The translations under genes were made by a program, and so were the position numbers. A stretch of 64,000 bases of DNA from Phaeosaccion multiseriatum (lineage: Eukaryota > Protista > Ochrophyta, other classes), in contig OZ218964.1 in the NCBI GenBank assembly GCA_965112735.1, forward strand, positions 1-64,000. The letters are read 5' to 3'. The notes under the pieces are model-generated. The model ran no database searches. It had not been told where the DNA came from and saw nothing but the letters and a program-made list of their open reading frames with translations. Numbering within the stretch: the first letter of the stretch is position 1; each line of letters begins with the position of its first letter. This document shows positions 3,001-26,700 of the stretch, piece after piece.

Positions 3001-6000
3001 CCTGGCCTGGCCTGGCCTGGCCTGGCCTGGCCTGGCCTGGCCTGGCCTGGCCTGGCCTGGCCTGGCCTGGCCTGGCCTGGCCTGGCCTGGCCTGGCCTGG
3101 CCTGGCCTGGCCTGGCCTGGCCTGGCCTGGCCTGGCCTGGCCTGGCCTGGCCTGGCCTGGCCTGGCCTGGCCTGGCCTGGCCTGGCCTGGCCTGGCCTGG
3201 CCTGGCCTGGCCTGGCCTGGCCTGGCCTGGCCTGGCCTGGCCTGGCCTGGCCTGGCCTGGCCTGGCCTGGCCTGGCCTGGCCTGGCCTGGCCTGGCCTGG
3301 CCTGGCCTGGCCTGGCCTGGCCTGGCCTGGCCTGGCCTGGCCTGGCCTGGCCTGGCCTGGCCTGGCCTGGCCTGGCCTGGCCTGGCCTGGCCTGGCCTGG
3401 CCTGGCCTGGCCTGGCCTGGCCTGGCCTGGCCTGGCCTGGCCTGGCCTGGCCTGGCCTGGCCTGGCCTGGCCTGGCCTGGCCTGGCCTGGCCTGGCCTGG
3501 CCTGGCCTGGCCTGGCCTGGCCTGGCCTGGCCTGGCCTGGCCTGGCCTGGCCTGGCCTGGCCTGGCCTGGCCTGGCCTGGCCTGGCCTGGCCTGGCCTGG
3601 CCTGGCCTGGCCTGGCCTGGCCTGGCCTGGCCTGGCCTGGCCTGGCCTGGCCTGGCCTGGCCTGGCCTGGCCTGGCCTGGCCTGGCCTGGCCTGGCCTGG
3701 CCTGGCCTGGCCTGGCCTGGCCTGGCCTGGCCTGGCCTGGCCTGGCCTGGCCTGGCCTGGCCTGGCCTGGCCTGGCCTGGCCTGGCCTGGCCTGGCCTGG
3801 CCTGGCCTGGCCTGGCCTGGCCTGGCCTGGCCTGGCCTGGCCTGGCCTGGCCTGGCCTGGCCTGGCCTGGCCTGGCCTGGCCTGGCCTGGCCTGGCCTGG
3901 CCTGGCCTGGCCTGGCCTGGCCTGGCCTGGCCTGGCCTGGCCTGGCCTGGCCTGGCCTGGCCTGGCCTGGCCTGGCCTGGCCTGGCCTGGCCTGGCCTGG
4001 CCTGGCCTGGCCTGGCCTGGCCTGGCCTGGCCTGGCCTGGCCTGGCCTGGCCTGGCCTGGCCTGGCCTGGCCTGGCCTGGCCTGGCCTGGCCTGGCCTGG
4101 CCTGGCCTGGCCTGGCCTGGCCTGGCCTGGCCTGGCCTGGCCTGGCCTGGCCTGGCCTGGCCTGGCCTGGCCTGGCCTGGCCTGGCCTGGCCTGGCCTGG
4201 CCTGGCCTGGCCTGGCCTGGCCTGGCCTGGCCTGGCCTGGCCTGGCCTGGCCTGGCCTGGCCTGGCCTGGCCTGGCCTGGCCTGGCCTGGCCTGGCCTGG
4301 CCTGGCCTGGCCTGGCCTGGCCTGGCCTGGCCTGGCCTGGCCTGGCCTGGCCTGGCCTGGCCTGGCCTGGCCTGGCCTGGCCTGGCCTGGCCTGGCCTGG
4401 CCTGGCCTGGCCTGGCCTGGCCTGGCCTGGCCTGGCCTGGCCTGGCCTGGCCTGGCCTGGCCTGGCCTGGCCTGGCCTGGCCTGGCCTGGCCTGGCCTGG
4501 CCTGGCCTGGCCTGGCCTGGCCTGGCCTGGCCTGGCCTGGCCTGGCCTGGCCTGGCCTGGCCTGGCCTGGCCTGGCCTGGCCTGGCCTGGCCTGGCCTGG
4601 CCTGGCCTGGCCTGGCCTGGCCTGGCCTGGCCTGGCCTGGCCTGGCCTGGCCTGGCCTGGCCTGGCCTGGCCTGGCCTGGCCTGGCCTGGCCTGGCCTGG
4701 CCTGGCCTGGCCTGGCCTGGCCTGGCCTGGCCTGGCCTGGCCTGGCCTGGCCTGGCCTGGCCTGGCCTGGCCTGGCCTGGCCTGGCCTGGCCTGGCCTGG
4801 CCTGGCCTGGCCTGGCCTGGCCTGGCCTGGCCTGGCCTGGCCTGGCCTGGCCTGGCCTGGCCTGGCCTGGCCTGGCCTGGCCTGGCCTGGCCTGGCCTGG
4901 CCTGGCCTGGCCTGGCCTGGCCTGGCCTGGCCTGGCCTGGCCTGGCCTGGCCTGGCCTGGCCTGGCCTGGCCTGGCCTGGCCTGGCCTGGCCTGGCCTGG
5001 CCTGGCCTGGCCTGGCCTGGCCTGGCCTGGCCTGGCCTGGCCTGGCCTGGCCTGGCCTGGCCTGGCCTGGCCTGGCCTGGCCTGGCCTGGCCTGGCCTGG
5101 CCTGGCCTGGCCTGGCCTGGCCTGGCCTGGCCTGGCCTGGCCTGGCCTGGCCTGGCCTGGCCTGGCCTGGCCTGGCCTGGCCTGGCCTGGCCTGGCCTGG
5201 CCTGGCCTGGCCTGGCCTGGCCTGGCCTGGCCTGGCCTGGCCTGGCCTGGCCTGGCCTGGCCTGGCCTGGCCTGGCCTGGCCTGGCCTGGCCTGGCCTGG
5301 CCTGGCCTGGCCTGGCCTGGCCTGGCCTGGCCTGGCCTGGCCTGGCCTGGCCTGGCCTGGCCTGGCCTGGCCTGGCCTGGCCTGGCCTGGCCTGGCCTGG
5401 CCTGGCCTGGCCTGGCCTGGCCTGGCCTGGCCTGGCCTGGCCTGGCCTGGCCTGGCCTGGCCTGGCCTGGCCTGGCCTGGCCTGGCCTGGCCTGGCCTGG
5501 CCTGGCCTGGCCTGGCCTGGCCTGGCCTGGCCTGGCCTGGCCTGGCCTGGCCTGGCCTGGCCTGGCCTGGCCTGGCCTGGCCTGGCCTGGCCTGGCCTGG
5601 CCTGGCCTGGCCTGGCCTGGCCTGGCCTGGCCTGGCCTGGCCTGGCCTGGCCTGGCCTGGCCTGGCCTGGCCTGGCCTGGCCTGGCCTGGCCTGGCCTGG
5701 CCTGGCCTGGCCTGGCCTGGCCTGGCCTGGCCTGGCCTGGCCTGGCCTGGCCTGGCCTGGCCTGGCCTGGCCTGGCCTGGCCTGGCCTGGCCTGGCCTGG
5801 CCTGGCCTGGCCTGGCCTGGCCTGGCCTGGCCTGGCCTGGCCTGGCCTGGCCTGGCCTGGCCTGGCCTGGCCTGGCCTGGCCTGGCCTGGCCTGGCCTGG
5901 CCTGGCCTGGCCTGGCCTGGCCTGGCCTGGCCTGGCCTGGCCTGGCCTGGCCTGGCCTGGCCTGGCCTGGCCTGGCCTGGCCTGGCCTGGCCTGGCCTGG

Positions 6001-7780
6001 CCTGGCCTGGCCTGGCCTGGCCTGGCCTGGCCTGGCCTGGCCTGGCCTGGCCTGGCCTGGCCTGGCCTGGCCTGGCCTGGCCTGGCCTGGCCTGGCCTGG
6101 CCTGGCCTGGCCTGGCCTGGCCTGGCCTGGCCTGGCCTGGCCTGGCCTGGCCTGGCCTGGCCTGGCCTGGCCTGGCCTGGCCTGGCCTGGCCTGGCCTGG
6201 CCTGGCCTGGCCTGGCCTGGCCTGGCCTGGCCTGGCCTGGCCTGGCCTGGCCTGGCCTGGCCTGGCCTGGCCTGGCCTGGCCTGGCCTGGCCTGGCCTGG
6301 CCTGGCCTGGCCTGGCCTGGCCTGGCCTGGCCTGGCCTGGCCTGGCCTGGCCTGGCCTGGCCTGGCCTGGCCTGGCCTGGCCTGGCCTGGCCTGGCCTGG
6401 CCTGGCCTGGCCTGGCCTGGCCTGGCCTGGCCTGGCCTGGCCTGGCCTGGCCTGGCCTGGCCTGGCCTGGCCTGGCCTGGCCTGGCCTGGCCTGGCCTGG
6501 CCTGGCCTGGCCTGGCCTGGCCTGGCCTGGCCTGGCCTGGCCTGGCCTGGCCTGGCCTGGCCTGGCCTGGCCTGGCCTGGCCTGGCCTGGCCTGGCCTGG
6601 CCTGGCCTGGCCTGGCCTGGCCTGGCCTGGCCTGGCCTGGCCTGGCCTGGCCTGGCCTGGCCTGGCCTGGCCTGGCCTGGCCTGGCCTGGCCTGGCCTGG
6701 CCTGGCCTGGCCTGGCCTGGCCTGGCCTGGCCTGGCCTGGCCTGGCCTGGCCTGGCCTGGCCTGGCCTGGCCTGGCCTGGCCTGGCCTGGCCTGGCCTGG
6801 CCTGGCCTGGCCTGGCCTGGCCTGGCCTGGCCTGGCCTGGCCTGGCCTGGCCTGGCCTGGCCTGGCCTGGCCTGGCCTGGCCTGGCCTGGCCTGGCCTGG
6901 CCTGGCCTGGCCTGGCCTGGCCTGGCCTGGCCTGGCCTGGCCTGGCCTGGCCTGGCCTGGCCTGGCCTGGCCTGGCCTGGCCTGGCCTGGCCTGGCCTGG
7001 CCTGGCCTGGCCTGGCCTGGCCTGGCCTGGCCTGGCCTGGCCTGGCCTGGCCTGGCCTGGCCTGGCCTGGCCTGGCCTGGCCTGGCCTGGCCTGGCCTGG
7101 CCTGGCCTGGCCTGGCCTGGCCTGGCCTGGCCTGGCCTGGCCTGGCCTGGCCTGGCCTGGCCTGGCCTGGCCTGGCCTGGCCTGGCCTGGCCTGGCCTGG
7201 CCTGGCCTGGCCTGGCCTGGCCTGGCCTGGCCTGGCCTGGCCTGGCCTGGCCTGGCCTGGCCTGGCCTGGCCTGGCCTGGCCTGGCCTGGCCTGGCCTGG
7301 CCTGGCCTGGCCTGGCCTGGCCTGGCCTGGCCTGGCCTGGCCTGGCCTGGCCTGGCCTGGCCTGGCCTGGCCTGGCCTGGCCTGGCCTGGCCTGGCCTGG
7401 CCTGGCCTGGCCTGGCCTGGCCTGGCCTGGCCTGGCCTGGCCTGGCCTGGCCTGGCCTGGCCTGGCCTGGCCTGGCCTGGCCTGGCCTGGCCTGGCCTGG
7501 CCTGGCCTGGCCTGGCCTGGCCTGGCCTGGCCTGGCCTGGCCTGGCCTGGCCTGGCCTGGCCTGGCCTGGCCTGGCCTGGCCCTGGCCCTGGCCTGGCCC
7601 TGGCCTGGCCTGGCCTGGCCTGGCCTGGCCTGGCCTGGCCTGGCCTGGCCTGGCCTGGCCTGGCCTGGCCTGGCCTGGCCTGGCCCTGGCCCTGGCCCTG
7701 GCCTGGCCTGGCCTGGCCTGGCCTGGCCTGGCCCTGGCCCTGGCCCTGGCCTGGCCTGGCCTGGCCTGGCCCTGGCCTGG
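1..7780. repeat. (CCTGG)n terminal tandem array with scattered CCCTGG variants; telomere-position repeat, possibly miscalled (CCCTAA)n
   Basis: Near-perfect 5-bp periodicity from the window start. CCCTGG variants cluster at 1-365 and 7580-7780. The array runs directly into CCCTAA repeats. Confidence 0.9.
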
Positions 7781-7821
7781 CCTAACCCTAACCCTAACCC
7801 TAACCCTAACCCTAACCCTAA
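7781..7821. repeat. Canonical telomeric repeat: CCTAA + (CCCTAA)6, C-rich strand of a left chromosome end
   Basis: Sequence cctaa-ccctaa x6 at 7781-7821. Confidence 0.95.
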
Positions 7822-8305
7822 GGAAATATTATACATTAGGCAGGTATTGAGTTTCTTGTTCCCTGATGACTCGTCGAAGGCGACAGTTGTTTTTGAGGAC
7901 AACATGGGGTGTATCAAGCTGGCAGAGAGCAATGCATCGACGCGGAGGATGAAGCACATTGATGTTCGGTTTCATTTTCTGCAAGACGCAGTGAAGGAGG
8001 CTCTTATTGCATTTGAGTACGTGGCTTCGAAGGCGCAGTTGGCTGACCTTTTGACGAAGCATGTGACCCCGGCAGTACTTGTAGCTTTACGTGAAAAGAT
8101 GATGGGTTTTAGGGCGTAGTTAGCGGAATGGACAGTACCAGGCGAGGAGGTGTGTTGAGATAAATCGATGTCGACACTAGATATCGATCTCATATCGCTG
8201 GTACAAGTCCGTTCACTTCTTCTTTTAGTGTTATGTAGCTAATAAGACGCTTTCCCACACTCGTGCAAGTACGACACTAGTCTCCAGGAGGGAGATATCC
8301 CAACA
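7820..8305 (+). mobile_element. 3' remnant of a Ty1/copia LTR retrotransposon (RNase H C-terminus, PPT, 3' LTR)
   Basis: Frame from 7820 reads KEILYIRQVLSFL...VFEDNMGCIKL...RRMKHIDVRFHFL...QLADLLTK to a stop at 8119, matching copia RNase H motifs. Purine tract ggcgaggagg at 8141-8150. LTR runs TGTTG (8153) ... CAACA (8305). Confidence 0.9.
8153..8305 (+). repeat. Putative short (~153 bp) 3' LTR
   Basis: TGTTG...CAACA termini immediately after the PPT. Only one copy is in the window. Confidence 0.7.
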
Positions 8306-8647
8306 TGAGCTCTACCATAACAGCGCGGATTATTGTACAGAGGCGGCGGCAACTCAGGAGCAATGTGCGTGGGTGCTGCGTGCGTGCGTGTGGGTGAGTG
8401 GGTGCGAGGTCCACGTCGACTCCACTAGCTGTCGACGATACCCTAATCCTACCGGTACCTACTTGCGGGTGAGGCGTGTCTTGAGATGAGCAGTTGATTT
8501 GCCAGAATTGCACGGTCCTCTGGGGACATTTTTTTTTCGCCTTTCGCTTTTTTGGGCCCGGCCCTCGGCCACGGGAGGCTTAGAATCTATAGAAATTAGA
8601 CCCCCTTGCCTCGACGGTGCGTAAAGTGGGCCCATTACATTACCACC

Positions 8648-10472
8648 ATGTCGCGATCGTCGCGGCATCTCCTACTGTTTTGTCTCCCCGCGTTGGCCAC
8701 TTGCTTCCTCCCGCCTTGCCGAGTCCCGTCAGGCACCAAATTGGGGGGAGCATCAACAGCAGCAGTAGCAACAGCAGCACCAGCAGCGACGGGCGAAGTT
8801 AGAACACCGACCCAAACAACCCCCACCATGGAGCCTTTGTCGGACCGCTTTGAAGTACTGGGCTTTCACAGTATAGAGCTGTACTGCGGTGACGCGTCCA
8901 ACACGGCGCGTCGGTTCATGGTGGGTCTGGGTATGCCACTGGTGGCGCGCTCGGACATGTCTACGGGAAATACTATGCATGCCAGCCATGTGTTGCAAAG
9001 CAATGACCTCTGCTTCGTGTTTACAGCTCCGTATGGTGTGGCTGCTGCGGACGAGGCAGATGCGCAAGGTGGTGACGAGCAGGACGCCTCGACAAGCATG
9101 CCTGGCTTCGATGGTGGCCTTGCCCACAGCTTCTTTCGAGAGCACGGACTTGGGGTCCGGGCCATTGGTCTCAAAGTCAAGTGCGCCAAGACGGCTTTTC
9201 AGGAGTTTACTGGCAGCGGAGGTGTGGGGGTGCTGGACCCGGTGGAAGTGGTGGATGCGGCTGGTCTGGGATCCGTGGTTGTCTCCGAAGTGGCGGCGTA
9301 CGGAGACGTGGTGCTCAGATTCATTTCCGATGACGGGGATGGGCAGGAGGGCCAAGCATACACCGGGCCTTTCCTGCCAAACTTTCAAGCTGTGGAGACT
9401 ACTACTAGTACCGCTTTCCAAGATTTCGGGCTTCAGGTAGGCGAGAATCCCAGCCCCTCCTGATCATCGTTAGTCCTCTCCCTCACTCGCTCACCACTAG
9501 TTACGGCCCTTTGCCTCGCGCCCCTGGCTTGCGTCCCAATGCAGCGACTTGATCATGCGGCTGGAAATGTATGCAACAGGGCGGAAACTGTAGAGTATCT
9601 GATCAATGGCGTGGGGGTTCACGAGTTTGCGGAGTACGTCGCTGACGATGTGGGAACGCTCGACAGCGGCCTGAACTCCGTCGTCCTGGCCACCAAGGAC
9701 GATATGGTACTGCTCCCCGTTCAGGAGCCGACATTCGGTACACGCAGGAAGAGCCAGATTCAGACCTACTTGGAGCAAAATCGAGGACCTGGTAAGAAGC
9801 TGCTGAGCAAGGCGGGGGGGATTGCTGCTGTTTGCTTGCACCCGTTTTACACTGCCGCACGTGCTTTTTTGACGTCGACATGCAGGTGTGCAGCATCTGG
9901 CCCTCAAGACGGACGACATTTTCACCACAGTGAGGCGCATGCGAGCAGCCTCGTGCATGGGAGGAATGGAATTTATGCCGAGCCCGGGTCCCAGCTATTA
10001 CCGTGACCTTCCTAGCCGCGTTCCCAGCTTGACGAAAGACGAGCTCACACAGATCGAGGTTAGTAGGCGATAGCCATATGATGATAGAGAGAGGAGGAGC
10101 GCTAATACGTCACCCGCCCCGCCCCCCATCACAAATGACCACAGGAGTTGGGCCTGCTTGCCGACGAAGCTGACGACGAAGGTATTCTTTTGCAAATCTT
10201 CACCAAACCGGTGAGTGGTTGCCGGGTTGCAGTCCAGATCTCTTCTTTTTCGCAGCTTGCCCCCACTCACCACAGCCAGTCTCTTTGGTAACAATCAGGT
10301 GGGCGACCGTGCCACCTTCTTTCTCGAAATCATTCAGCGAACGGGATGCATGGTGGAGCAAGAGGACGGCTCCTTGCAGCAGAAAGGCGGGTGTGGAGGG
10401 TTCGGAAAGGGCAACTTCAAGGCCCTATTCAGTCAAGTCGAAGAATTGTTCAGCAAGAGCGCCTCAGCCTAG
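8648..10472 (+). CDS. HPD: 4-hydroxyphenylpyruvate dioxygenase, 5 exons, probable plastid presequence
   Basis: Exons 8648-9436, 9545-9791, 9886-10058, 10145-10210, 10299-10472 with GT-AG introns. Motifs FHSIELYCGDA, LDHAAGN, SGLNSVVL, KSQIQTYLE, GPGVQHLAL, LLQIFTKP, FLEIIQR, GGFGKGNF. N-terminus has a hydrophobic stretch then ATC-F. Confidence 0.95.
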
Positions 10473-10978
10473 ATGGGGGCGATGCCAACGGAAGGGCGTC
10501 ATCCCACGCCGGCTGGCGCAGGTGCGCAGGGACTACAGTGTGGTAGAGCTACCTCCCTTGGCCTAAGAGTGGGAAGGTACTCCCAAGCTGAGCGCTAACG
10601 TCCCGGTCCCAAAGAGAGAGTGAGGAGAAGTGATACTGAATCCAAGTGTATTAGAGACTAGGGCTTGATCCACCCAATGACCCTGGAAGCTTCCTTGTGT
10701 TTGAAGGAAGCTTTCCACTTGGTCTTTAGGGTCCGGATACTGAGGCAGGGGCCAACCAGCCCCAGCCAGGCTCCGTCAGCCTAATTGACACCTAAATTCT
10801 AACTACATACTAAATACGTAATTGAGCCCTGTAAAACGACATGCACTGTCGCCTACAGATAGGATAGAGCTAGACACACGGACAAGGTAACAGCAACCAC
10901 CTACGCACATGGGATAGTGAGAGCCCAGGCCACCCGTTCTCACTATACTGGCGTTGATAGCGTGTGCCACAACCTCAC

Positions 10979-11770
10979 CGTGCTTGCTCGCCTGCCCAAT
11001 CATGGACGTGAACACGTCGCCGCGCGGGGGGGCAAATCCTGTGGAGGTGTGCCCTGCGACGAGTGGGACCCTGTATACACTGACGTCCAGGCCCTCCTGC
11101 CCTGCCTGCATTACGAGCTTCTCTGCTACCCACTGCGGGGTTTGGGGGAAACGAGACAAACAGCGAGAAGGTGAGCATAGCGTGATAAGAGGGGAGAGTA
11201 AGGCAGTACTGCCTTTGATCGTACCTTGCTTTGGGAGTACCCGAGCTGCTTGCCGAGCGCGCACCCCGAGGCAGGAGCTGCAGTCATGTCTCCCAAGGGC
11301 GCGTCGGCGGGCATCCTCCCGTCCTCGTTGGCCATGTCCGGAGTAAGAACAGCTATTGTGGACACCATGTGCAGCGTCTTCAAAGAATTCGTAGCAGCGA
11401 AGCTGAGCACATGAAGAGTCCCCAGTACGTTCGGCGCGAACAGCTGCGCATAGCTCTTGGAGTAGCTGAGGAGAGCGGCCGAGTGGTAAACGAGAGTCAC
11501 TGTGCTGGCCAGGCGCTGATACACCTCTTTGGAAAGCCCGAGAGATGGAGAAGTGATATTCCCCTCGTAGACCATCAGCCTTCCTCTTTCCGACTCGCGC
11601 AGAGTAAGGTTGGCTTCTTTCAAGCCGAACAGAGTGCGCTGCATGGCGTCCTTATCATCCAAAGCGCGAACAATGCAGTGCACAGTCGACTGAGGGTGAG
11701 CCTGCAGCAAGTCCACCAGCAGATACCGCCCTACGAACCCTGTCACGCCTGTGAGCAGGATGGACTCTGC
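10979..11770 (-). other. PKS region: terminal thioester reductase (extended SDR) domain, C-terminal part not found
   Basis: ILLTGVTGFVGRYLL, HCIVRA, GNITSPSLGL, YHSAA, PNVLGT, VST, GYSQSK | intron 11133-11224 | WVAEKLV..YRVPLVAG. Confidence 0.82.
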
Positions 11771-14700
11771 TACTGGTGTGCTTAACCTCACACCTCCTGC
11801 TGATGCCTGCCACGCCATTTCCCGTGTCGTGGCGGCGATTTCGCTCGGCAGATACGCATCCGCCCACAGATCCGGAGCTTCTCTCTTACCCACCAGATCT
11901 GCCTCGAACTCTCCATCAGCGCCGTTGCGACTGTGGGCGCTTCGCGACATACGCACCGCGGGCACCCCTTCGAGCAGCACATCGTCCGTCTGCTGCAGCC
12001 CGGGACCAATGAGAGTTCCCGGATACACGCCGCAAGCACGGGGAAGAGACGCCGAGGCAGCAACAATGGATCCTGCCCCTACCGTCACCCTTCGGCCAAC
12101 CTGAACCTTCTCAAATAGAACACAACAGGTGGTGCTTTCCTCGCTGTGAGCTGGAAGCGCCCTCCCTTCTTCCACGCTCCCAGTCACGCTGTAATCAAAG
12201 GGTGTAGACGCCGAGTCGTCTGCCCCCGCTGTCGCTTTTCGTCCAAGAAGGACCTTCTCAAGCAGACTACAGCAATTGGTGCTTTCGTCACTGCGAGCTG
12301 GAAGCCCCCTCCCTCCTTCCACATGCACGACTCGTCGGGCATCGACCACGCAGTCCCTATCCACAACGCTTCCTGCCCCCAAGTGCACCAAATCGAAGCT
12401 GGACAGGCCATCCGTTGCAAGCACCACCGCATCTTTGCCCACTTCAGCTCCCATAGCTCGTAACCACAAGGAGTGTGCTGCAGTGCCAGCGAGGCCGTTG
12501 ACACCACTCTGTCTGGCTACCTGCGTGAAGGTAGTGCTGAACAAGTCTCTGTGGAACGTCACGCCCCCGACCGCCGCGTAGCAACCTGCGCGAGCTCGGC
12601 CAACGACGCCCCACTTGAGCACCATAGCCCACACAATCATAGCCATGCTGAGTGACAAGACGATCACAGGCGACGTGACCAGAGCCAGCCACCTACCCAA
12701 CGCAGTCACAAGCCACTGGGCCAACAGGGTGCTCACGTACACACTCGTGAATTGAAGCAGAAGAATGGCAACAGGGCCCACGATGGAGTACAACATGGTT
12801 CCCGCACCAGCCCACCGCGCGAGTCCCCCACCCGCCCGTGGCTCCTGCTGCTGCCCATGCCGCTTGTGGAGCTTGACTCGCACCACTAGGTCGCCACTGC
12901 GAAGAGTTCTCTGTCGCACCGTCGGATCGAAGGACGTCGATGACGACGCACACGTCAATGGGCCGACCAAAGAAGTGTCGCAAAGCTCAGACCCCGGACA
13001 CAGACAGGAGCCTGGTGCTGTCACCGCACAAGCTCCAATTTTGACTGTCCCTGTATATCCTTGCGCCCGGGTGGCGAAGCTCCCCGACGCCACAGAGTGA
13101 GGCCCCAGATCTAGCAAAGCAGGGTCCAGCACAGGGGAAGGAGCGCTCACTTTGGCAGTCCAGGCGACGCGAGCGCCCAGAGAACGAAGCCATATGACCA
13201 TGCCAGGCCCTCCTGAGTGCAGAACCATGTACCGGGGGTACACCAGTCGCATCATCACGTCGACAGCATGGACCTCTTGCCCCGTGACGCCGCGGCCACT
13301 GCTGCGGCTGCTGATGGCAGCAAGGGCTCCCAAGCATCGCCTCAGAGCGACACTCATGGCGGTCATGCAGATGCCCGCAACTGAATAGGACAAGGCCAGA
13401 ATCAGCATTGGCTTCGCCAGATACTGTTCCGTTGTCAGCTCCTTCAGCGGCGCGAGAGTGTCCACAAAACCAAGGGCGATGGGAAGCAGCGGCACCAGCG
13501 CCAGATCGAAGGTGGCGGCACATGCAGCCACGAGGTAGCCCACGTCGAGGGAGCGATAGTCCGGCACGTAGCGTCCAAGCTGAGGCACGTACGTGAAAAG
13601 GCCCCACGCTTTACTCATCTCCCCCCAGACAAAGTACGCGGGTACACTCGCGGCCACCATGCAAACTGCGGCCAGCGCGAAGCCAACCACAGTCCTCATG
13701 ACGTCTTTCACGAGTGTGGCTGCAGGGTCATTCACACTGGGCAGCAGGGAGCTGCTCCCCATCCTATCAGCATTGTCGTCGCACTGCTTGGCCGGAGAGC
13801 CCCCCCACTCTGTGCAAGGGGCAAGGAGCCCACACCGCCCGCTGACCACCGTGGACGGTCGCAAGCGCACCAGTTCTCCCATGGTTGTGCCTCCAAACAC
13901 CTGAGACGATGCCCCCAACACGCAATCTGCGCCAACGGTGATTTGTCGGAGAAGGAGATGGCGGTCCTCTATCACCGCAGGCCGAACCCGACAAAACTCC
14001 TCCACAGTGGACTGCCGCCCCAAGTGCACCAAGTCGAACTCCGATACCGACACCGAATGCAGGCGACACCCATGCCCAATCTTCGCTCCGAGTGCGCGAA
14101 GCCACCATGTCCACACCACACTCCCATGCAGCGGCAGCCGCTGCAACGCAAAGTCCGTCACGCGATCCACAAAGAGCCAGCGGAAGTAGTACCCGCTATT
14201 GATGGGATAAGACCCCGCCCGGTACCTGCCGATGACCACCCACTTGGTCAGCGTCACCACCACCATGAGCAGAAGAGCCCACGAGAGGAAAGCGAGAGGT
14301 ACACAGGCCAGCGCGGTCCACCTGCCCCACTTGTCTAGCACAATCGAGTCAAGGGCGATGACAGCGGGCAGCGCAGACGCGGCGACCAGCAGCGAGCTGT
14401 AAACCATCGCCACGATGCCCATGCAGAAGCTGACAATGTCGGAGGAGGACGAGCCAACGTAGTCAGCATCCCTGCCGTCCAGAGCACGGTCACCATCTTC
14501 TCTCTCGTCAGCATCCCTGGCGTCCAGAGCACTGTAGCCTTCTCTCCTCTCGTCCTCCCGCACAGCAGCGGCGTCGCTGGAGTCTGCTTTGATCACCACG
14601 CCCACACCTCTATTGTCTTCTAAAGGAAATAAAAGCCCCAGTATATGCCGCGCGATATCTGACGGTGTCGGGTGTTCGATCAAAATCGAAGGCGGTAGAC

Positions 14701-17700
14701 TACAGCCGATCCACGCGGAGAGTCGGTTGACAATCTCCACCGAGGCCAACGAGTCCACGCCGGCCTCCATTAGGAGAGTGGAGTCATGAATCAAATCATC
14801 TTCGTCTCCGATGCAGTGCTCCACAACCTGCTTCACCTTGTTCACAACCATTGCTTGGCGCGCCACCGGTGTCAGGTCCAACAACTCCTCATGCAGCTCC
14901 GAATCTCCTTCTCCTGCTTCCAGATGCCCCTTTACATCGCCCACAAGCTCTTCGAGCATGGAAACACGCCCACCTCTCGTGGCCTTCCCATACTTGGCCC
15001 AGTCCATCCCAGGCAGGATGGACACATCGCCCAAAGACGCTGAAGACGCTGACGACATAACAGCAGCGTCTAAGGCAGCCATGCCCAGCTCAGCTGACAC
15101 CATGCCCACGCCCGCAAGCTCAGACTGCTTTTGAACGACATCGAGCTGGGCGGCCATACCTATGTCAGCCCACGGCCCCCACTGCAATAACGTCCCTGTG
15201 AGCCCGAGGTGTCGCCTGTGCCGCATCAGCCCATCCACAGCAGCGTTCGCCGCAGCGTAGTTGGCCTGTCCAGCGTTACCCAGTACTCCGGCCATGGATG
15301 TGAAGCACACAAAGAAATCCAGGCTTGAGGCGCGATCCTCCTCCCTCGACCAACCCAAAGAAAGCTCGTGCAAGTTCACAGCTCCCTGCACCTTGGGTCG
15401 GAACACCTTCACCACGCTCTCCGTCGTTTGCTCACTCAGGATCTTGTCGTCCTGAACCCCGGCAGCATGCACCACACCGCGTACAGGTGGGAGAGACACC
15501 AGCACAGCTCCAGGCAAGCCCGAAGCGCCTGGGCGTCAGCCACATCACAAGTAGGGGTGTGGATACTCAACACCGATGTCTTCTGAAGCCGCTGCCACTG
15601 CTCATTCATACTCTCGGTGACCTTTCCACTCCGCGACAGCAGCACTAAGTGACGAGCGCCCCTCGAGGCGAGATGCTGGGCCGTCACGAGGCCAAGAGCC
15701 CCCAGACCGCCGCTGATGACATACGTGCCATCGGACACCACTGGCACACCATACGAGGGGTTGGTCAGGACCACCTTGCCGATGTGCTTCGCTTGGCTCA
15801 TGTATACCATGGCCTTCTGGGTATCCTCCCTCATGTCAAAGAGTATGGTCGGTAAGGGCTTCACATTGCCAGACATGCAGTCATCAGCAAGACGCTGCAG
15901 CCCGCCACTGATCCAGCCCGGCTCACCCGCCGACAAGTCAGACTCAATCATGCTGTCCAGTGCCAGCAGCTCGTACATCACATCGGACCGGGCGGTGCGC
16001 ATCTGGTCGTGATTCCACACGCCTCGCTTGCCAATCTCGACGAATGTACCACCCTCGCTTAGCATGGCCAGCGAGAAGGGAATGTAGTCGTCGCTGAGAG
16101 AGTTGAGCACCACATCGACCTTCACCTCCCCCATGGACAGCTTGAACGCCTCTGCGTCTCGCGATGACGCAATGTGCTCCACTCCCAAGCCCCGGAGGAA
16201 GTCATGCTTCACAGCAGCACCAGCAGTGGCGTACACCTCTGCGCCGACCCGCTGAGCATACTGCACGGCAGCAAGGCCCACACCGCCCGATGCGGCGTGA
16301 ATCAGCACCTTCTCTCCAGCCTTGAGGTCGTGGAAGGCCTTCACCACCGTCAAGCACACGGTGGGAAGTGCAGCGGCCTGCTCGAAGCTCAACACGGCCG
16401 GCATCACAGCCAGACACGCATCACTCGTCGTCATATGACTGCGCAAACATCCTCCGTCCGCAAAGCCAAATACTGCGTCGCCGACACGGAAGCGCGAGCT
16501 TCCTCCGACTCTGATCACCTCCCCGGCGAACTCGGAGCAAGGATCCCCAGGATCGCCAGGGTACATGCCAAGCACATTAAGCACGTCCCGGAAGTTCAGG
16601 CCAACAGCCCTGACTGCCACCTCTACGATGCTGCCAGCTGGGTCAAGGAGCTCATGTTTGGCCACATCAACATCATCGCGAAGGAGAAAGGCATTGGCTA
16701 TACTACCTCTTGCCCTAAGCTCCAGGGAAAACGGAAGATTCAAAGCTGGGCGTGAAAGCCGAGGCATCCAGCACTGACCATCGCGTACCCACACATCTTC
16801 TGTGGTGCCAGGGAAGGCCAAGCCTAAGGCAACCTCGCTGTCTGAGGCCTCCTTGTCGCTCAGGTCCACCACGCGAATCTGCATGTAAGGGTGCTCCATC
16901 CTTGCAGTCCGCACCAAACCTGCCACCCAGCTGTGACGCCAGTCCTCGCCGCTTTCGACGCCTCTTGTCAAAACCGTCAGCGGCACATTTGACGTAGTCG
17001 ACAGGCTCCTGAGTAGCGATATCAGGGCGTAAGCCGCTCGTGCTTGCTGGCCCCCTTCTGCGTCTTCTTCGCCAGCTCCGGGTATCAGCACGTACAAGAC
17101 GCGAGCCCACTCGTCCTCACCAAGAGGAAGAGCATCATCATCCCCGGAGACGTCTACCCCCCCATATCGAGTGTGAACGTGCACGTTCTCCGGAACGCAG
17201 CGCCGCACTGCGGCAATGATTGCAGTCTCTCCCTCCCTCTCGTCCTGTGGAATAACCACCAGCCACTTCTGTGGCGCCGCCGCCTCAGCAGGGTCAGTAT
17301 CACTACCACGGGCCTCCTCCTGTGTAGACGGTTCAGCAGCCTGCCACTCCAATGCGTACATTGCACGACGAATGGGGCTGACACGCACAAAGCCCCTCGC
17401 CCGCTGCACACGGAAGCCCCGCATCTCCACGAGCACCTCTTTGCTGTCGAAGTCTGCAATCACCACGTTGAACTTTGCGCTGTCCGCCACTGACTGGACC
17501 TCACTCAGTTTCGTGTGCACCCACACGTTCTTTCCCGTCATGAAGGCGGAAACAATCATCTCGTCAAAGCCAGCAGGTAGGAATGGAGAGCTCCCCCCCT
17601 CCTTGAGCAGCTTCCTTGGCAGCGCTTGCATGATGGCATGGGTAGCATTGTCCAGCACCGCGGGGTGCAGAGCAAAGCCCTTCATCTCCCACGGCTCGCA

Positions 17701-20700
17701 CAGCTCCTCATCCAGGGCACACACGACTGACAGAACCTCTCCGTCCCCTCCGTACATGTGGCGGGTCCGCTGAAAGCGGGGGCCGTACTGGAAGCCGGCG
17801 TCTGCGAAAGACTTGTACAGCTCACTCGATACGTCATGCTCGCCAACTCTAGCTCGAATGGATTCCACGTGCAGCGAAGTACGCGCCGTGCTTCGCTCCA
17901 AGACAGACACGTGCTTCATTCTTGCCGTGGTGCCCTCGTCGCCCGTGGCACCTCCGAAGAAGTGCATACTTCCATCTGCCGCGTGAAGGGCACTCATCCC
18001 GGCACAAACCATTGTATGACGGCTTTGCGCATGGTCCGTGCCGGCCTGTTGGAAACCCTCAATCTCCAGTGGAACCACAAAGCTGGCTCCTTGCAGGACT
18101 ACCTGCTGCTCCACCCCAAGCTGTCTGCCTCCTAGAGCAGCGACGACGCCCACTTCAATGTACGTCACCCCCGGAATGATCACCGTATTGTTGACGGCAT
18201 GGTCCTTGAGAAGGTCCTTGAGGTGAGGGGAGAAGGGGCTGGCGAGCCGCATTGCGTCTCCCTCTTGGACCACCTCACCACTGGGCATAAACGCCAGCGG
18301 AGGCTTGTACCAAGGAAATGATCGGCGAGTCGGATAAAGCTCAAGATGCTCCGGCCCCGTTACACTGCCCAGAGCCGCTGCAAACGAACCCCCAGAACTC
18401 TGCCCCTGCGTGAGGGAGGAGATCCATGCCAGCCCCTCGCGACGCTCCCACTTGGCTCCCATGTTGCTCAGCACAGGGTTGGGGCCCACCTCAATGATAC
18501 TCAGGCCAGCCTCCCTCTCGTCTCCCATCCAGTGCTCCACCAGCGTGTGGATGCTTTCGGCGAACAGCACAGGAGACAGCATATGCTGTACCCAGTACGC
18601 GGCCTTTGTCACCTCCTCCCCTCTCACCACCTCGCCCGTCACGTTGGACACCAGGGGGATGCGTGGGGCGCTGAGTGACACCTGCCTCAGAGCCTCCTCC
18701 AGAGCGCGTACAGCGGGCTGCATCAGAGGGGAGTGGAAGGCATGCGACACCTCCAGGCCCTTGCAGCCCACCCCATCTGCCGTGAGCTTCTCCACCACCT
18801 TGTCCACAGCGCTGCGAGCTCCAGAGATCACGCTCGCGCTCGGTCCATTCGACGACGCCAGCACCACCTCCCCTGCCCCCCCCGCAGCGTCGATGCTTGC
18901 CAAAGTCGCCGCCTTGCCTGACCTCACTGCGAACATCACTCCCTCGCCCTCGGGGCAGGCCTGCATGGCGGCTCCTCTCCTGGCGGATAGCATCAGCCCG
19001 TCCTCTAGCGACATCACGCCGGCCACGCAAGCCGCCACTACCTCGCCCAGGCTGTGGCCCATCACCATCGAAGGCTCCACGCCCTCCGACTTCCACAGCT
19101 CGCACAGGGCGTACTCCAGCACAAACAGGCACGGCTGGCAGTAGCGGGTCTCCTTCAGCAGCGCTTGTGGAGTCTCCTCCTCCTCCTCAGCGGCAGCAGG
19201 GTACAGGAGCTCCACCACAGATTTGTCCAGCCAGGCCCGCTCCATAAGCAGCCTGCTGCACCGCTGCACGCACTCGCGGAACACGCCCTCCTTCTCGTAC
19301 AGCTCCCTGCCCATGCCCACGTACTGCGAGCCCTGTCCGGTGAACAAGAAGACCACGGGTGGGTTCTCTCTGCTGCACTTCTTCTTCCACTGCGACAAGG
19401 TCTCGCTTCCCTCAACCATCGTTGGTCCGAGGCTGCTGAGCACAGCATGTGCATTGGTACCTCCGAATCCGAAGGAGCTAATGCCGAGAACCACTGATCC
19501 ATCGGAATTGATGGGAATAGGAGTCACGCAAGATGGGAGCAGGACGGCGAATCCCTCGACGTCAAGCTCGGGGCTTTGCTCCGTGAGGTGCAAATTTGGT
19601 GGAGCGGCCTTGTGCTGTGCCATCAGCACGGCTTTGATGAGTCCGGCAATGCCTGCTGCTCCCTCCAAGTGCCCAATGTTTGTCTTGAGCGCCCCAACAA
19701 TTAAAGGCTTTGTCTCGTCGCGGTCGTGGGCAAACACTCCTCTGAGAGCGCTCATCTCGATGGTGTCGCCGAGAGACGTGCCCGTGCCGTGCGCCTCGAT
19801 GACGCTAACGTCGTTTGGAGATAGCCCAGCGTCGAGCAGGGCGTTTGCGATGAGCTGCTTTTGAGCACCAGGGTTCGGAGCCGTCATCCGCGCGCTGGCC
19901 CCGTTATGGTTCACAGCCGAGCCTCGCAGGACAGCCAACACCTCATCTTTGTCGGCCAGGGAGGCATCTAGGCGCTTCAGCACGATAACTCCGCACCCCT
20001 CGCCTCTGACGTAGCCGTCGGCCGTCTTGTCAAACGTTTTGCAGCGCCTGGGAGGTGAGGGCGGACGGGGGAAACAGGGGAGAGGTAAGGAGACTGGAGG
20101 AGAAGAGTAGACTTGAGGTTCTCACTCTGCCGTCCTGAACGAAGCAGTCATCAGGTGCACACTCTTTACATCCACCTGATGGGTCATAATGCTCACTTGC
20201 TTACTCCCTCACTCCCTTCCTTCCTTCACTCCATCCTTCCTTCCTTCTCTCCTTCCTCCATCCTTCCTTCCGTCCTTCCTCCCTCCCCTGCCTACTTCCC
20301 ACTCCTTCCCTCCCTTGCTTCCTCTCTCTCCCTCCTTGCCCCGTCCCCCCCCGCCACCCCCCCTCGCTTCCTCTCCCTCCTTCCCTCCCCCGCTCACTCA
20401 CTCACTCACTCCTTCCTACCCTCCTTCCTTCCCTCCCTCCCCCTCTTCCCTCCCTTCCTCTTTCCTTCCCCCCCCTCCTCCCCCTCGCTCACTCACTCAC
20501 TCACTCACTCACTTCCTTACCCGTCTAGCGACAGAAATCCTCCTGAAGAAAGGAGCTTGAAAGGCGCCTCGCTCAGCAGGAGATTCACTCCGCCGACCAC
20601 CGCCGCGTCACACTTGCCCAATCGGAGGCTGCTGCAGGCACTGTCCAGGGCGACTAAGGAGGACGAGCACGCCGTGTCCACGGTTGAGCTGGGCCCATTC

Positions 20701-23700
20701 AAGCCCAGCGCGAAAGAAACTCGGTTGGCCAAATTGGACATGGAGGCCCCCGACGCAGCGTACACGCCATCACTTTCACTGGCTGCTCCTCGGTTCGCTT
20801 TGGCCTGCAGCCAATCGCTCCCAGCGCACCCAATGAAGATCCCTGTCTCGCTCTTGCGGAGACTGCTCTTGTTATAGCCTGCCCTGTGCAGCGCCTCGAA
20901 GGCCACCTCCAACAGCACGCGCTGGTTGGGGTCCATGCTCTGCGCTTCTGCTGACGAAATGCCAAAGAAAGTGCTGTCGAAGAGATGGATGCCCTCGATA
21001 AAGCCTCCTCGCCACTCCTTCGAGCCGCCTCCCCACCTGTCTGCTGGAGCCGTAGAGATGCAGTCCAAACCCGTGCAAAGCATACGCCAGAAACTCTCGG
21101 GTGAAGTCACTCCTCCTGGAAAGCGGCACGCCATGCCCACCACCGCCAGCGGAGCTCGCATGCTTTGAGGCCAAGTCGAGGTGTGGCTCAGCTCTCGCGC
21201 TAGGCCGGGGGTGCCTCCTTTTCCCATTACCTCGCCATCCAGCCAGCCCGCGAGCGCCGCAATGCTCGGGTGTTCAAAGAGCACATCAGTGGTGGCTGTC
21301 ACCCCCAAGTCGGTGTGAAGGCGATTGCGCACCTCCTCAAGTGCCATCGAATCCAGGCCTGCTTCCATCAAGGGCACATTGTCGTCCAGTGGTGGCATGT
21401 CTGCATCAACACACTTCAACACGACTGCCTTGAGGAGCTCCAACAGAGTCCCGTGGCGATCCTCGGGTGACAGCATAGAGAGAGTCCCGCGTAGCTGTGA
21501 GAGGGCGTCTCCAGCTGGGGGAAGGGCAGATGCAGGACCCACGCCACCGCGTAGTGGTGTTGCTATCTTCGGGAGGGAAAACTTTCGCGACGAGGGGAAA
21601 CCCCGCCACGGGGTGTCACCTCGCTCTGCTGCACCTTCGGGCCTTCTGTCGCCGTAGCTACGCAAGATGACGTGGGCGTTGAAACCACCAACAGCATAGG
21701 AATTGATGGCTGCGAGCAGCGTCGAGCCGTCGGAGCAGTAGGAGGACAGCGGCGTCCTTCGGGTGGGCAGCGTAACGGGCACGCCCTCCAGCTTGAGGTT
21801 GGGATTGACCTCCTCCAGGTGAAGGTTGGCTGGAGCTACTTGGTGCTGCATCACCAAGACGGCCTTGATGAGCTGAGCCATCCCCGACGCGCCCTCCATG
21901 TGGCCCAGAGTAGTCTTCACGGTGCCCACCACCAGGGGTGAGGCCTCAGGCCTATTGGGGGTGAAAGCCGCTCTGAGAGCGCCTGAGGAGGGAGGGGAGG
22001 ACATGAATGAGCTTTTCTTCAATCTGTCTCACCACAGCATCTTTCTTCGAGTTGAGAGGAGAGAAGGAGCTTACGATGATGGCCCAACATAAATGCGCGC
22101 CTCCTTCTACGTACCCAGTTCGATGGCATCGCTCATGACGGTTCCCGTGGCGTGGGCCTCGACGTAGTTTACTTCTCTCCCCTCGCATCCTGCCTGCCGT
22201 AGGGCGCTCCTCGCCAAGCTCTGTTGGGCGGCTCCCTTGGGGGCGGACAGAGAAGTGCTGACGCCGTTGTGGCTGACAGCCGCTGCCTTGATGACGGCGA
22301 GGACGTTGTCTTCATCCTTGATGGCCTCGCACAGGAGCTTAAGCACGACGGCCCCGCTGCCCTCGCTGCGCACGTAGCCGTCCCCGCCCACGTCAAAGGA
22401 CTTGCAGTGCCTGTGGAAGAGCATGGTGTGGAAGTAGGAGGAGAGGAGTCCGGGGAGGAGTGCAGGCACGTTCGTTAGGTGAGTCCAAAGCTCCGGTCGA
22501 GACATTCGAATCCAGGCAAGCCAACACAGAGAGGCTTCTCTCTGCACGACGAGACCTTACTCCTACAAAGTCAACAGTCAGCGAAGGCGACTTCATTGAC
22601 ACGGTACATTCCAAAGAGAGCGAGGCGCAAAAGCAAAATTTCTCACCCTTCTTTAGATAGAAGCCCCGCACTGGCCAGGCCGCCAAAGCCTTGGTCGTGG
22701 AGCAGCAGGTTGACCCCGCCAACCACGGCAGAGCTGCATTGCCTCAGTCTTAGGTTGTTGCAAGCGTTGGTCAGGGCCACTAATGACGATGAGCATGCTG
22801 CATCTACGCTTTCGCACGGCCCGACAAGGCCCAGCGTGTGCGAAATACGGCCTGCGAAGCAAGCTCGGCTTGCACCTGCCAGGGTATACGCGTTGGGAGA
22901 CGCACCACTCGCGCCCTTGCGCAGCACCGCGGACCAGTCGCTCCCTGCCGCGCCCACAAACACGCCGACTCGGTGCCCTTCAAGTCTGTGCCTGCCCTCG
23001 TAGCCGGCTCGATGCAGAGCCTCATACGCCACTTCGAGCATGATGCGCTGGTTGGGGTCCTGGGCCTCCGCCTCAGCGATGGACATGCCGAAGAATGCGT
23101 TGTCGAATGCTTCCACGCCGTCGATAAAGCCTCCTACGTATGATACGGGGAAGGAAGAGTGTCCAGAGAGGATTAGTGGGGCATTGAGAAGCACTGCAGA
23201 GGAAGGGATATAGGCTGAGACGCAAATTTCGTGTGCAGCATGGTAAAAACGCACCGCGCACTCCCGCTCCCAAGCCTCGCTCAAGAGGCGCATCGGTGAC
23301 GCAGTCTTCCTCATTGCACAGCTTCGTCCAGAGCTCTTGCGGGCTGTTGCAGCCACCAGGGAACCGACAGGCCATCCCAATGACTGCAATGTCGCCGCCA
23401 CCGTCGGAGAGGATAGCTCCCTCGCCAGCGACTGACGGGGACAGTCCTTCGTCTCCCTCGCCCTCTCCAAACAGGGCCACCTCTATATGTGCTGCGAGCA
23501 AGGTGGGTGTCGGATAGTCGAAGAGCGCCTCGACCCCAATCTCGAAGTCCTTGTCACCCCCCTCCTCCCTCGTCTCGCTGCCGAGAAAGTCCTCGAGCAT
23601 CACCGCCAGCTCGGCCATCATCACTGAGGTCATGCCCGCCTCCATGAAGCGGTCGTCGGCGGTCAAATCCTGATTCTGCCTCACCTCCACGGCAAACACA

Positions 23701-26700
23701 AGGACCTTTTCCAAGATGATGGTCACCCTTTCCTCCTTACTGAGGCTCTCCAAAGCACATACAGCCAGACTGCCTTCTTTCCCTCCTTTCCCAACAGGGA
23801 CCTCGCCTTCGATGAAGCGAGGTCTTTCCTCAGGAGCTGAGCGCATGCTGGCAAGTTTCACAGGAGGGTGGTCCTGTCGGTGTGAGTTAGGGGAGGAATG
23901 GGCACGACAGCAGGGGTGAGACTCGACGCAAAACCTTCAGCAGACGATTCCCTCACACAATTGTACGGATGAAAAGGGCTGTAAAGGGCAATTACCAAAG
24001 CACACAGATAGAATGGGGCAAAGGAAGGGAGAGATGGGCAAGAGACCTTCATCTCCTGCTCGCACGCACCTGTGACATCGCAGCGCTGTCCTCGATGAGC
24101 TCGTGCACCATGTGCAGCTCGCCAGCGTGAAGTGCCTGTCTCGTCGCCCGCCGTCGGATCTTGCCACTCGTGGTCTTGGGGATGGTCTTCTGCTTGATGG
24201 CCACCACCTTCGCCGCTCTGAGACCCAAGGAGGACGACAAGGCGGCTTGAGCGGCCTCCACCACTGCCTGGGCCTCGCCCTCTCGCTCTTGGCGGATCTC
24301 GAACACCACCTCCAGTACGCCGTCCCCTCCCGTCTCGTCGGAGGAGAAGGCCGCAATGCAGCCCTGCCGAACAGCGTCAGACGCTTCTTGCACGGCGAAC
24401 TCGACGTCCTGCGGGTAGTGGTTGACCCCGTTGAAGATGATGAGGTCCTTGATGCGGCCGCAGATGTACAGCAGCCCCTCTTCCACAAAACCCAAGTCAC
24501 CTGTCCGCAGGAACTGGCGAGGAGGCAAGCTGTCACTGCCCCCGGCCCCACCCTGGACAGAGAGCTTCGCCTTGAATACCTCCTTCGACAGTTCCGGCTT
24601 GCCCCAGTATCCGGCGGCGACAGAGGGAGAGGAGACCCAGACCTCTCCCGTGGCTCCTGCTTCGCTGACCTCGCCCATGGTGTCGGGATGGACTATTCGA
24701 ATGTCCATAAAGTCTGCCCTCTCGCTCGGGGAGCCGACGCTGGTGAGCTCCGGCCTCGAGGAGGAGCGGTACAGAGAGTCGATCGAGCAGGCTGCTCCCA
24801 TCGAAGACAAGAGCCAAATGAGCACACACACATTACAGAGAAGGTGGTCAGGGTAGGGTGGGGTGTCAGCAACACAAAAAGACAAAAAACAGTGCAGCAA
24901 TAATTGGATAAGCGCCACGCGAACGACACGTGTACGCACCTGATGCCACATGCTCAGCCAACCCGTAGGCCGATGCGAACCACCTGAGCAAAGGAGGCGA
25001 CGGTGTCAGGCGAGGGCATTGGTCCGGCCCACGAGGTGGAGAGGCCAATATTTCCCCCTCTTGAGCTCTACGGGACGAAGCAGGGGAGAGGAGAGAAATG
25101 AGCAGCGGGGGGCTTTTCGTTCCCGCCTGTCATACCTGTCTGAGAGGCCATGGGGGCGGAAGGCTTCTTCGAACCTCTCAACGGTCTCTCTCCGAATAGG
25201 CTCTGCTGAGCTGATGAGTGATACCAGGCTGGATAAGTCCAACGCGGGCTCTTTGCGAGTGCCGCGCACCTTGGCCATATAGCGGGCACAGAGGGCGCAG
25301 GCGAAGTCGGGGGCGACGGACCACTCCACGCGGTGCTGAGAGATGAGCTCCAGCCAGAGCAGGGGCCGCTTGATGAAGCTCACGGGGGACATGTAGTGCA
25401 TACACTGGCCAGTCAGGAAGGGGCCGATAAAGCCAACCACAAGACCCATATCCTGTGATGGGGGGGATAGAACAGCAACGAGGGGAAGAGGCGTACAGGA
25501 GAGGTGTGACGTCTGCGCTGTGACTCGATATCATGCATGGAGCGTGTCCTTATCCTCCTTCCTCTTTCACCCCCCACATACGGTTACATACAGACGTGTG
25601 TTGATCCTTCTCTCGCTTGTCATAAGCATCGTATACCAGATCTGCCACTTCCTCTCTGCAAGAGGGATACACTTCACTCACTCACTCATTCATTCACTCA
25701 CTCACTCACTCACTCACTCACTCACTCACTCACTCACTCACATGGTATTGTGGCAACCAAGAGAAGCCTCGCGCCGGCAGGGTGCCAACCTGAAGGCCCT
25801 CCCTTCTTGCTGCCACCTGCAGAGACACCTCCCTGAGAGTCTGCTGCCTCTCTTGTGAATCGACAGGCACAGTCGACTCCTTCGTCTCCTCCTCCTTCCT
25901 TGTCCGAGCCCTCTTCCTTCGCACGACGTGCTCATTGTCGCCCACCATGAGGTACACGTTGGCCATGAGCGCACCGAAGGTCACCATGACGCCCTTGGGG
26001 TCGCCGGTGGAGCCGCTGGTGTACTGCAGGAAGGCCAGGTCCTCTTCGGTCACGCAGAGCTCGTCAAAGCTCCTCGCTGAGGACGAGGAGGAGAAGAAAC
26101 TCCGGAGCAACCCCCCATCTGTAGCCTTAAAGTCGAGGTCCGTAGGCCACAGCTTGCTCGAGTCAGAGAGCGGATTGGCCCTGTCCACTCCGCGCAGAGC
26201 TGCGATCTTGGAGTCGGTAAGGCACAGCAGGGGCTTGCAGTCGGCCACGATCTTGCTCATCTTGGGCAGCGACTTGGACAGGGGAGGAGCGGGCGGGTAT
26301 ACCATCACCGCCACCACGCCCGCCCTCAAGCAGCCCAAGAAGGCGGCGAAGAAGTGCAGGCCCGGCCCATAGCACAGCACCACCATGGCTCCTTTGGGCA
26401 CGCCCCACTCTTCCCGCAGCATGTAGGCAATCTTGCCCGCCTGGAAACAAGAAAGAAGTCGAGAGACTTGTCCGGTGGGTGGTGGGTGCAAGAAATGTTA
26501 CCCTTGCTGTACGCATAGTAGGAGATGGGCATCACAACAAGGGTATGTCCGTATGGAAGAAAATACGTCGCTGGCTGCGGGCCCAAAGAAGTCCGTGAAA
26601 TCATTGCCTTCTCCTTCTACTCGTCCCTCCTACCTCATCCCACACGGTCTTGAAGGTGTGCGTCTCCACGTGCTTTCCCTTGCCATCATACCAGAAGGCG

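Follow-up and report, generated by a model that had tools for sequence, protein, structure and literature searches.

A divergent Pls/PosA-like membrane domain between carrier and thioester reductase in a polyketide synthase gene of the alga Phaeosaccion multiseriatum

In the alga Phaeosaccion multiseriatum, a polyketide synthase (PKS) gene near the start of contig OZ218964.1 (assembly GCA_965112735.1) carries a long membrane segment between its last carrier domain, ACP3, and a thioester reductase (R). Chain release decides the final product of a polyketide or peptide assembly line. What is this segment, and what could it contribute to release? The DNA analyzed, called the window here, was the first 64,000 nucleotides of the contig. 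The segment was located on the minus strand in a single uninterrupted frame of 1463 codons (11126–15517), in which residue i starts at window position 15517 − 3(i − 1). This frame encodes the C-terminal half of a KR domain, ACP3, an acidic linker, three units of transmembrane (TM) helices and hexapeptide repeats, and the first part of R. The segment is almost certainly a divergent eukaryotic form of the C-terminal membrane domain of Pls (epsilon-poly-L-lysine synthetase) and PosA (delta-poly-L-ornithine synthetase). The searches were run on continuous frames, with exons left unjoined.

An earlier note on the window had described three units, each with hydrophobic helices followed by a W-L-R-x-L/M-G-A-x-V/I motif and hexapeptides, in the C1-C2-C3 layout of Pls. 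The three motifs were found at residues 472, 776, and 1018 (window positions about 14104, 13192, and 12466) and were followed by the segments FDLVHLG, ALLDLG, and FDLVHLG. Hydrophobic helices ahead of each unit were seen both in hydropathy and in an AlphaFold model. TIGR02353, the NCBIfam model of the Pls/PosA terminal domain, matched with an E-value of 1.6e-49 and 168.9 bits, below its curated cut-off of 423.1 bits. A word search with residues 360–1200 returned 174 proteins, nearly all bacterial and all of the architecture A-T-(TM2-LbH)x3, where LbH is a left-handed beta-helix; the best E-value was 5.6e-59. A unit profile built from 224 bacterial Pls units recognized unit 1 at residues 363–579 (161 bits, E 1.7e-51), unit 2 at residues 672–859 (33 bits, E 1.6e-12), and unit 3 in two pieces, 912–1062 (73 bits) and 1135–1191 (17 bits). 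Pfam Hexapep scored 25.0 bits, slightly under its 27-bit cut-off. Judged by these profiles, the three-unit match far exceeds chance. The units nevertheless differ in quality: unit 1 is canonical and unit 2 is degenerate. No further Pls-like units were found elsewhere in the window.

The fold was modeled with AlphaFold2 for residues 360–1200 from an alignment of 88 sequences. The mean predicted local distance difference test score (pLDDT) was 74.7, and the predicted TM-score (pTM) was 0.81. A Foldseek search of the PDB with this model returned only hexapeptide acetyltransferases, with probability 1.0. In VIA-align, unit 1 matched serine acetyltransferase with Z 14.7 and a root-mean-square deviation (rmsd) of 1.9 Å over 96 residues; values for QdtC, PerB, and PglD were similar, and all such matches fell on unit 1. 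The proposed left-handed beta-helices are supported by the model and by both structure comparisons. The whole model superposed on ESM Atlas cluster representatives of Pls/PosA with TM-scores of 0.74–0.76 (676–695 residues, rmsd 3.3–3.6 Å), and therefore the arrangement of helices and three beta-helices is that of the family. The C1-C2-C3 layout is mirrored in this whole-domain fold as well as in the TIGR02353 match, the word search, and the unit profile. A sequence search for a solved Pls structure gave only weak LbH matches, with E 0.03 or worse. In the PosA model of Patel et al., three five-turn beta-helices pack together above six bent helices, and the symmetry is approximately threefold (PMC10522769). 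The window domain likewise has three homologous pairs of membrane helices and three beta-helix units that, by this fold match, would pack into one pseudo-threefold domain on the cytosolic face. The single-chain pseudo-trimer suggested in the earlier note is thus supported, and it had already been published for PosA (PMC10522769).

The unit 1 beta-helix resembles that of trimeric LbH acyltransferases (serine acetyltransferase, QdtC, PerB, PglD, and the maltose and galactoside acetyltransferases), with Z 13–14.7 and rmsd about 2–3 Å over ~100 residues. These enzymes and the PosA model have threefold packing in common (PMC10522769). However, the acyltransferases consist of separate subunits and use an acyl-CoA donor, while the window domain is one chain of three unequal units fused to membrane helices, with a carrier thioester as the predicted donor. 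The usual catalytic histidine of LbH acyltransferases lies at the subunit interface, and no equivalent was identified in the window domain.

Unit 1 (13781..14437, minus strand) consists of membrane helices 361–394 and 399–428, a strand, two core helices, and a left-handed beta-helix (about residues 479–579). It is the best-conserved unit, with pLDDT mostly >90. Unit 2 (12878..13726, minus strand), the unit with the 33-bit profile match, consists of a hydrophobic helix (598–624), a loop of ~34 residues, a proline-kinked, semi-hydrophobic helix pair (659–693), a membrane helix (701–740), and a degenerate beta-helix (about 782–880). Relative to bacterial TM3 it contains an insertion of ~50 residues. 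The possibility that this insertion is an unrecognized intron was ruled out by its GC content at third codon positions (GC3) of 0.70–0.77 and by its presence in all members of the clade described below. Unit 3 (11945..12826, minus strand) consists of membrane helices 898–940 and 942–972 and a beta-helix (about 1024–1191), with pLDDT of 76–95 outside a duplicated loop. The loop belongs to a tandem duplication of 147 nt (12073..12322, minus strand; direct repeat at a spacing of 147, 78% identity), which adds 49 residues comprising one beta-helix coil and a Cys-rich loop. The duplication splits the profile match of unit 3 and is private to the window gene, being absent from every relative compared, including the protist carrier–Pls-like–reductase proteins. 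In all four sequencing runs, contigs matched only the 887-bp segment between window positions 11972 and 12858 and continued with 131–255 letters unlike the window. By this comparison, another locus or haplotype has only that 887-bp part of unit 3 in common with the window.

The context of the domain is different from that of Pls and PosA. Pfam gave the domain order AMP-binding (FAAL/DIP2-like)-ACP1-KS-ACP2-KS-AT-DH-ER-KR-ACP3-Pls-like-thioester reductase in the minus-strand frames. The name ACP3 is appropriate, as the gene has two more PP-binding domains further upstream. The C-terminal half of KR (residues 8–118; 15164..15496, minus strand) matched Pfam KR with E 1e-36, and the N-terminal half is read in a different frame, upstream of about 15508. 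ACP3 (residues 227–292; 14642..14839, minus strand) matched PP-binding with E 1.7e-11 and has the serine motif GVDSL. The translation between ACP3 and the first membrane helix (14438..14641, minus strand) is an acidic low-complexity linker outside all profile matches. Apart from the FAAL/DIP2-like loader with which the gene starts, there is no AMP-binding domain, and no A-T pair stands directly before the Pls-like domain. In Pls and PosA (TIGR02353), three tandem units of a membrane-helix pair and a left-handed beta-helix likewise follow the carrier directly, and the framework motifs KW..GR, WLRxLGAxIG, and W.GSPA are common to both. However, Pls and PosA have an A-T pair upstream, while the window has a PKS KR-ACP; their domain is terminal, while in the window R follows from residue 1253 (NAD_binding_4). 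The separation of ACP3 from R is thus ~960 residues, close to the ~950 estimated before. The window domain also differs in an extra hydrophobic helix and kinked hairpin in unit 2, in the replacement of C2/C3 invariants, and in the concentration of constraint in unit 1.

R retains the motifs of a thioester reductase. Its first part (11225..11761, minus strand) matched Pfam NAD_binding_4 with E 1.4e-37 and TIGR01746 with E 2.8e-38. It has a Rossmann fold with the motifs LTGVTGFVG (TGxxGxxG) and GYSQSK (YxxxK; Y1427 and K1431). When the R domains of four relatives were used in tblastn, the match stopped at 11225. Sequence and three-frame translation placed a GT-AG intron of 92 nt (11133..11224, minus strand) directly after the codon of the YxxxK lysine. 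The next reductase exon (10979..11132, minus strand; WVAEKL ... QASKH) corresponded to positions 182–220 of the NAD_binding_4 profile and had a weak tblastn match at 11037–11120. NAD_binding_4 was thus covered up to about position 220 of 258.

For ACP3 to reach R, both must lie on the same side of the membrane, and the earlier note had expected an even number of TM helices. Hydropathy and the AlphaFold2 model gave seven long hydrophobic helices rather than six, with the surplus one in unit 2. The single bent TM3 of bacteria is replaced in the alga by three elements, namely helix 598–624, the ~34-residue loop of low confidence, and the proline-kinked pair 659–693; TM4 corresponds to 701–740. 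This layout was found in every Pls-plus-reductase relative compared. In dinoflagellates, the middle element is only semi-hydrophobic, with an FGPP break, and unit 2 is shortened. The flanks of the beta-helices are rich in lysine and arginine (4–9 K/R), compared with 1–3 K/R in the short loops between paired helices. From the overlay on the six-helix fold and these K/R-rich flanks, we infer six crossings and one non-crossing or re-entrant element. A naive count is therefore odd, but ACP3 and R would still lie on the same, cytosolic side, as fold homology and the K/R-rich loops suggest.

To find relatives, 1.84 billion cluster representatives were searched exhaustively. Most of the 1556 matches aligned in three separate pieces, each to unit 1, as is typical of the bacterial proteins, and a few were collinear over the whole query. 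R directly followed the Pls-like domain in nine of the 150 best cluster representatives, which came from Prorocentrum, Symbiodinium, a EukProt transcript, a chytrid, and assembly or metagenome contigs. Only the exhaustive search revealed such fusions; the word searches, within a range of 460–2560 aa, found none. Collinear matches were obtained for CAK0807952.1 of Prorocentrum cordatum (C-A-T-Pls-R, from Pfam and cluster look-ups), CAE7780214.1 of Symbiodinium pilosum (C-A-T-Pls-R), the EukProt transcript P0286 (C-A-Pls-R), the ENA contigs P0264 and P0349 (AT-flavoenzyme-DH-ACP-Pls-R), and the ENA and JGI contigs P0224, P0350, and P0309 (Pls-R fragments). Among the non-collinear matches were KAJ1556441.1 (P0282) of the chytrid Cladochytrium tenue, an A-T-Pls-R protein outside the clade of the window, and a Stygiella PKS that ends in a Pls-like domain without R. 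In P0200, a JGI metagenome protein of 1890 aa, A-T-Pls is followed by a 4'-phosphopantetheinyl transferase domain.

The window sequence and five sequences with R grouped together with a Shimodaira–Hasegawa-like approximate likelihood ratio test (SH-aLRT) value of 99 in IQ-TREE under a mixture model and with 98 in FastTree. The bacterial sequences formed a separate clade with 100% support. The trees had long branches, and their deeper order was unsure. By this phylogeny, the window domain is in a distinct, well-supported protist clade in which the Pls-like domain always precedes a reductase. Like the window, these protist proteins are collinear over three units, have the insertion in unit 2, lack the bacterial motifs, and carry the reductase directly downstream, but they are only 25–31% identical to the window (whole-library search). 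TGxxGxxG and YxxxK are kept in the R of all clade members. The upstream modules differ: dinoflagellate members have C-A-T modules of nonribosomal peptide synthetases (NRPSs), while the window has a PKS.

Does the domain keep the catalytic residues of the family? The earlier note had proposed alignment to Pls/PosA for these residues, and the alignment showed that the bacterial invariants of C2 (E-ST, ADD, GNS) and C3 (E.D, QTH, HDR) are mostly replaced. The C3 motif QTHLFxDR is not kept in unit 3. The only invariant C3 residues that align in the window are D1042, H1065, and R1070; H1065 and R1070 stand beside gaps in the clade alignment and are not conserved there. Residues that are invariant or nearly so across the clade in unit 1 are K425, W426, Y432, S441, R446, R485, E493, D495, E517, S559-G-R561, and the W.G.P end. 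Most of the clade-invariant polar residues are in unit 1, and the constraint is concentrated there, not in C2/C3. Bacterial C3 has invariant acidic residues at the positions of E493, D495, and E517, and these three residues could serve in place of histidine as a general base. In the alignment used for viewing with bacterial units, the first copy of the unit 3 duplication was left out; no conclusion rests on it. Since the bacterial C2/C3 invariants are gone and constraint lies in unit 1, polymerase chemistry of the Pls type cannot be assumed, and on these sequence grounds the domain is predicted to be unlikely to act as a polylysine-type polymerase.

In Pls, the C-terminal domain joins a T-bound unit to a freely diffusible acceptor, and the growing chain serves as that acceptor (PMC9205021). 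In the alga, the carrier, the Pls-like domain, and R would form one membrane-coupled chain-release module. Both termini of the Pls-like domain would lie on the beta-helix side, so that R and the beta-helix domain would both be within reach of ACP3, whose bound chain would be the donor. Reduction of the ACP-bound thioester by R would give an aldehyde or alcohol. If the beta-helix domain works like that of Pls, it would pass an acyl group from the ACP to a nucleophile, either diffusible or held in the membrane, other than an amino acid and possibly the alcohol produced by R. The main site of this domain would be in or beside unit 1. A Pls-type domain acting with R as a membrane-coupled release module is the best explanation overall, and we give it about an even chance. 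The particular mechanism of acyl transfer plus reduction, drawn by analogy, is plausible but somewhat short of even.

The logic of a reductase plus an acyltransferase is known from wax-ester and ether-lipid synthesis, for example from a fusion of fatty-acyl reductase (FAR) and acyltransferase in Tetrahymena. Such pairs, and on this reading the algal module too, bring an NAD_binding_4-type reductase and an acyltransferase into physical contact at a membrane. However, their acyltransferase fold is unrelated and their substrates are acyl-CoA, and thus the analogy is one of logic only. A bolder version, which we consider quite improbable, is a self-feeding, membrane-embedded termination machine. 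R would make an alcohol from one chain, and the pseudo-trimeric beta-helix domain would esterify the next ACP-bound chain onto this alcohol, possibly iteratively. Wax-ester-like lipids or polyesters (algaenan- or cutin-like) would be delivered into or across the membrane, and the same module would serve protist PKS and NRPS lines.

The conserved pair of the Pls-like domain and R, the fold kept across distant eukaryotes, and the polar conservation in unit 1 make a membrane-coupled release module the most likely of the readings. Two competing off-loading routes had been envisaged in the earlier note; the conserved pairing within a distinct clade speaks more for cooperation of the two domains than for competition. 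Several observations weigh against the release module. The bacterial C2/C3 invariants are replaced in the window and missing from the whole clade with R, and no catalytic histidine conserved across the clade was found, which leaves catalysis by the beta-helix unproven. In this copy of the gene, the KR halves lie in different frames and abut at 15508–15511 with zero bases between them (tblastn), and the copy may be non-functional. No splice joints were found in the contigs of the four runs holding the stretch, which run through the reductase intron and come from runs not recorded as RNA. The C-terminal subdomain of R was not found downstream of 10979–11132 by Pfam or tblastn (7800–11000). If catalysis had been lost, the domain could be an inert anchor or conduit that tethers the end of the synthase to the membrane or lets the product enter or cross it, with R as the sole release catalyst. 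This would suit the lost bacterial invariants, as only 20/48, 21/61, and 28/73 of the columns with ≥85% conservation in the bacterial alignment are kept by the alga in units 1, 2, and 3. It would also suit the degenerate unit 2 with its 33 bits and its shortening in dinoflagellates, a clade without a conserved histidine, and an R that is always present and appears competent. However, the full three-unit fold is retained across very distant eukaryotes, and ~10 invariant polar residues of unit 1, including E493, D495, and E517, exceed the needs of an anchor, which makes an inert domain unlikely in our view. A true Pls-like iterative polymerase, which would build a polyester or polyamide at the membrane by linking polyketide-derived monomers head-to-tail, is highly improbable. 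The overall fold and the carrier-to-domain arrangement are those of Pls and PosA, and the growing chain of Pls is itself a diffusible acceptor (PMC9205021), but the bacterial motifs are missing, it is not obvious where the fully reducing last module would supply a second nucleophile, R comes after the domain, which is therefore not terminal, and the TIGR02353 score is far under its cut-off. An isopeptide-linked homopolymer of diamino acids is an unlikely product, with the PKS context against it.

Independently of the function of the family, this copy could be a decaying subtelomeric paralogue (pseudogene), in which the intact-looking Pls-like frame is a remnant. An intron at 15436–15517 joining the two long frames was ruled out, as the frame changes without intervening bases; this leaves a frameshift or an assembly error as the cause of the KR frame change at about 15508. 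Two runs gave contigs that crossed the site gap-free, and another contig family departed at 15493, a sign of a paralogue or allele that reads differently there. The frame change with its gap-free contigs, the missing C-terminal subdomain of R, the private duplication in unit 3, and a gene end ~3 kb from telomere repeats are all consistent with decay. The gene may be truncated near the chromosome end, or its last reductase exons may be too divergent to detect. On the other side, the 4.4-kb frame is stop-free with coding-type GC3 throughout, and it keeps almost every clade-invariant residue. As the runs may be the very data from which the assembly was made, an assembly error could account for the frame change, and a poorly conserved R tail could hide in short exons. 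A pseudogene is a real possibility for this copy, though the less favored one.

LbH regions were reported at the C-termini of three multidomain PKS transcripts of Karenia brevis, and one contig had three LbH motifs (Van Dolah et al. 2017, PMC5725682). These are likewise protist PKSs ending in hexapeptide or LbH regions, a likeness of description and not of sequence comparison. The Karenia brevis paper describes LbH motifs only and draws no link to Pls/PosA, membrane helices, or a reductase, and a search of the literature for a PKS–Pls fusion turned up this remark only (PMC5725682). The Pls-type domain and the pseudo-trimer idea were already known; the window domain belongs to an uncharacterized protist branch of Pls-like domain plus reductase.

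To our knowledge, all characterized domains of the Pls/PosA type are amino-acid polymerases of bacteria and fungi. In the alga, a membrane fold of this type is joined to a PKS carrier on one side and to a reductase on the other, and the pairing recurs in dinoflagellates, in further contigs, and in a chytrid outside the clade. This recurrence points to an unstudied, widespread route by which eukaryotic microbes finish lipid-like or peptide products at the membrane. The clade also reveals which motifs of the bacterial proteins the fold can do without. ACP–Pls-like–R is a concrete, testable tridomain with a short list of conserved residues in unit 1.

Other features of the locus were also observed. 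The first KS (window 20520–23936, minus strand) is followed directly by ACP2 and lacks its own AT, KR, DH, and ER; the gene has a single AT, in the second module. Window positions 10688–10900 have no second copy within the window and had a contig depth 10–80x that of the neighborhood, which marks them as high-copy sequence in the genome. The window opens (1–8119) with 7.8 kb of a CCTGG pentamer repeat, followed by only six CCCTAA units. The translation of the fragment after these units (KHIDVRFHF ... ADLLTK) has no Pfam match and resembles the C-terminus of a copia-type Pol. The CCTGG repeat, the CCCTAA units, the copia-like fragment, and the genes that follow indicate that the start of the window is a eukaryotic chromosome end.

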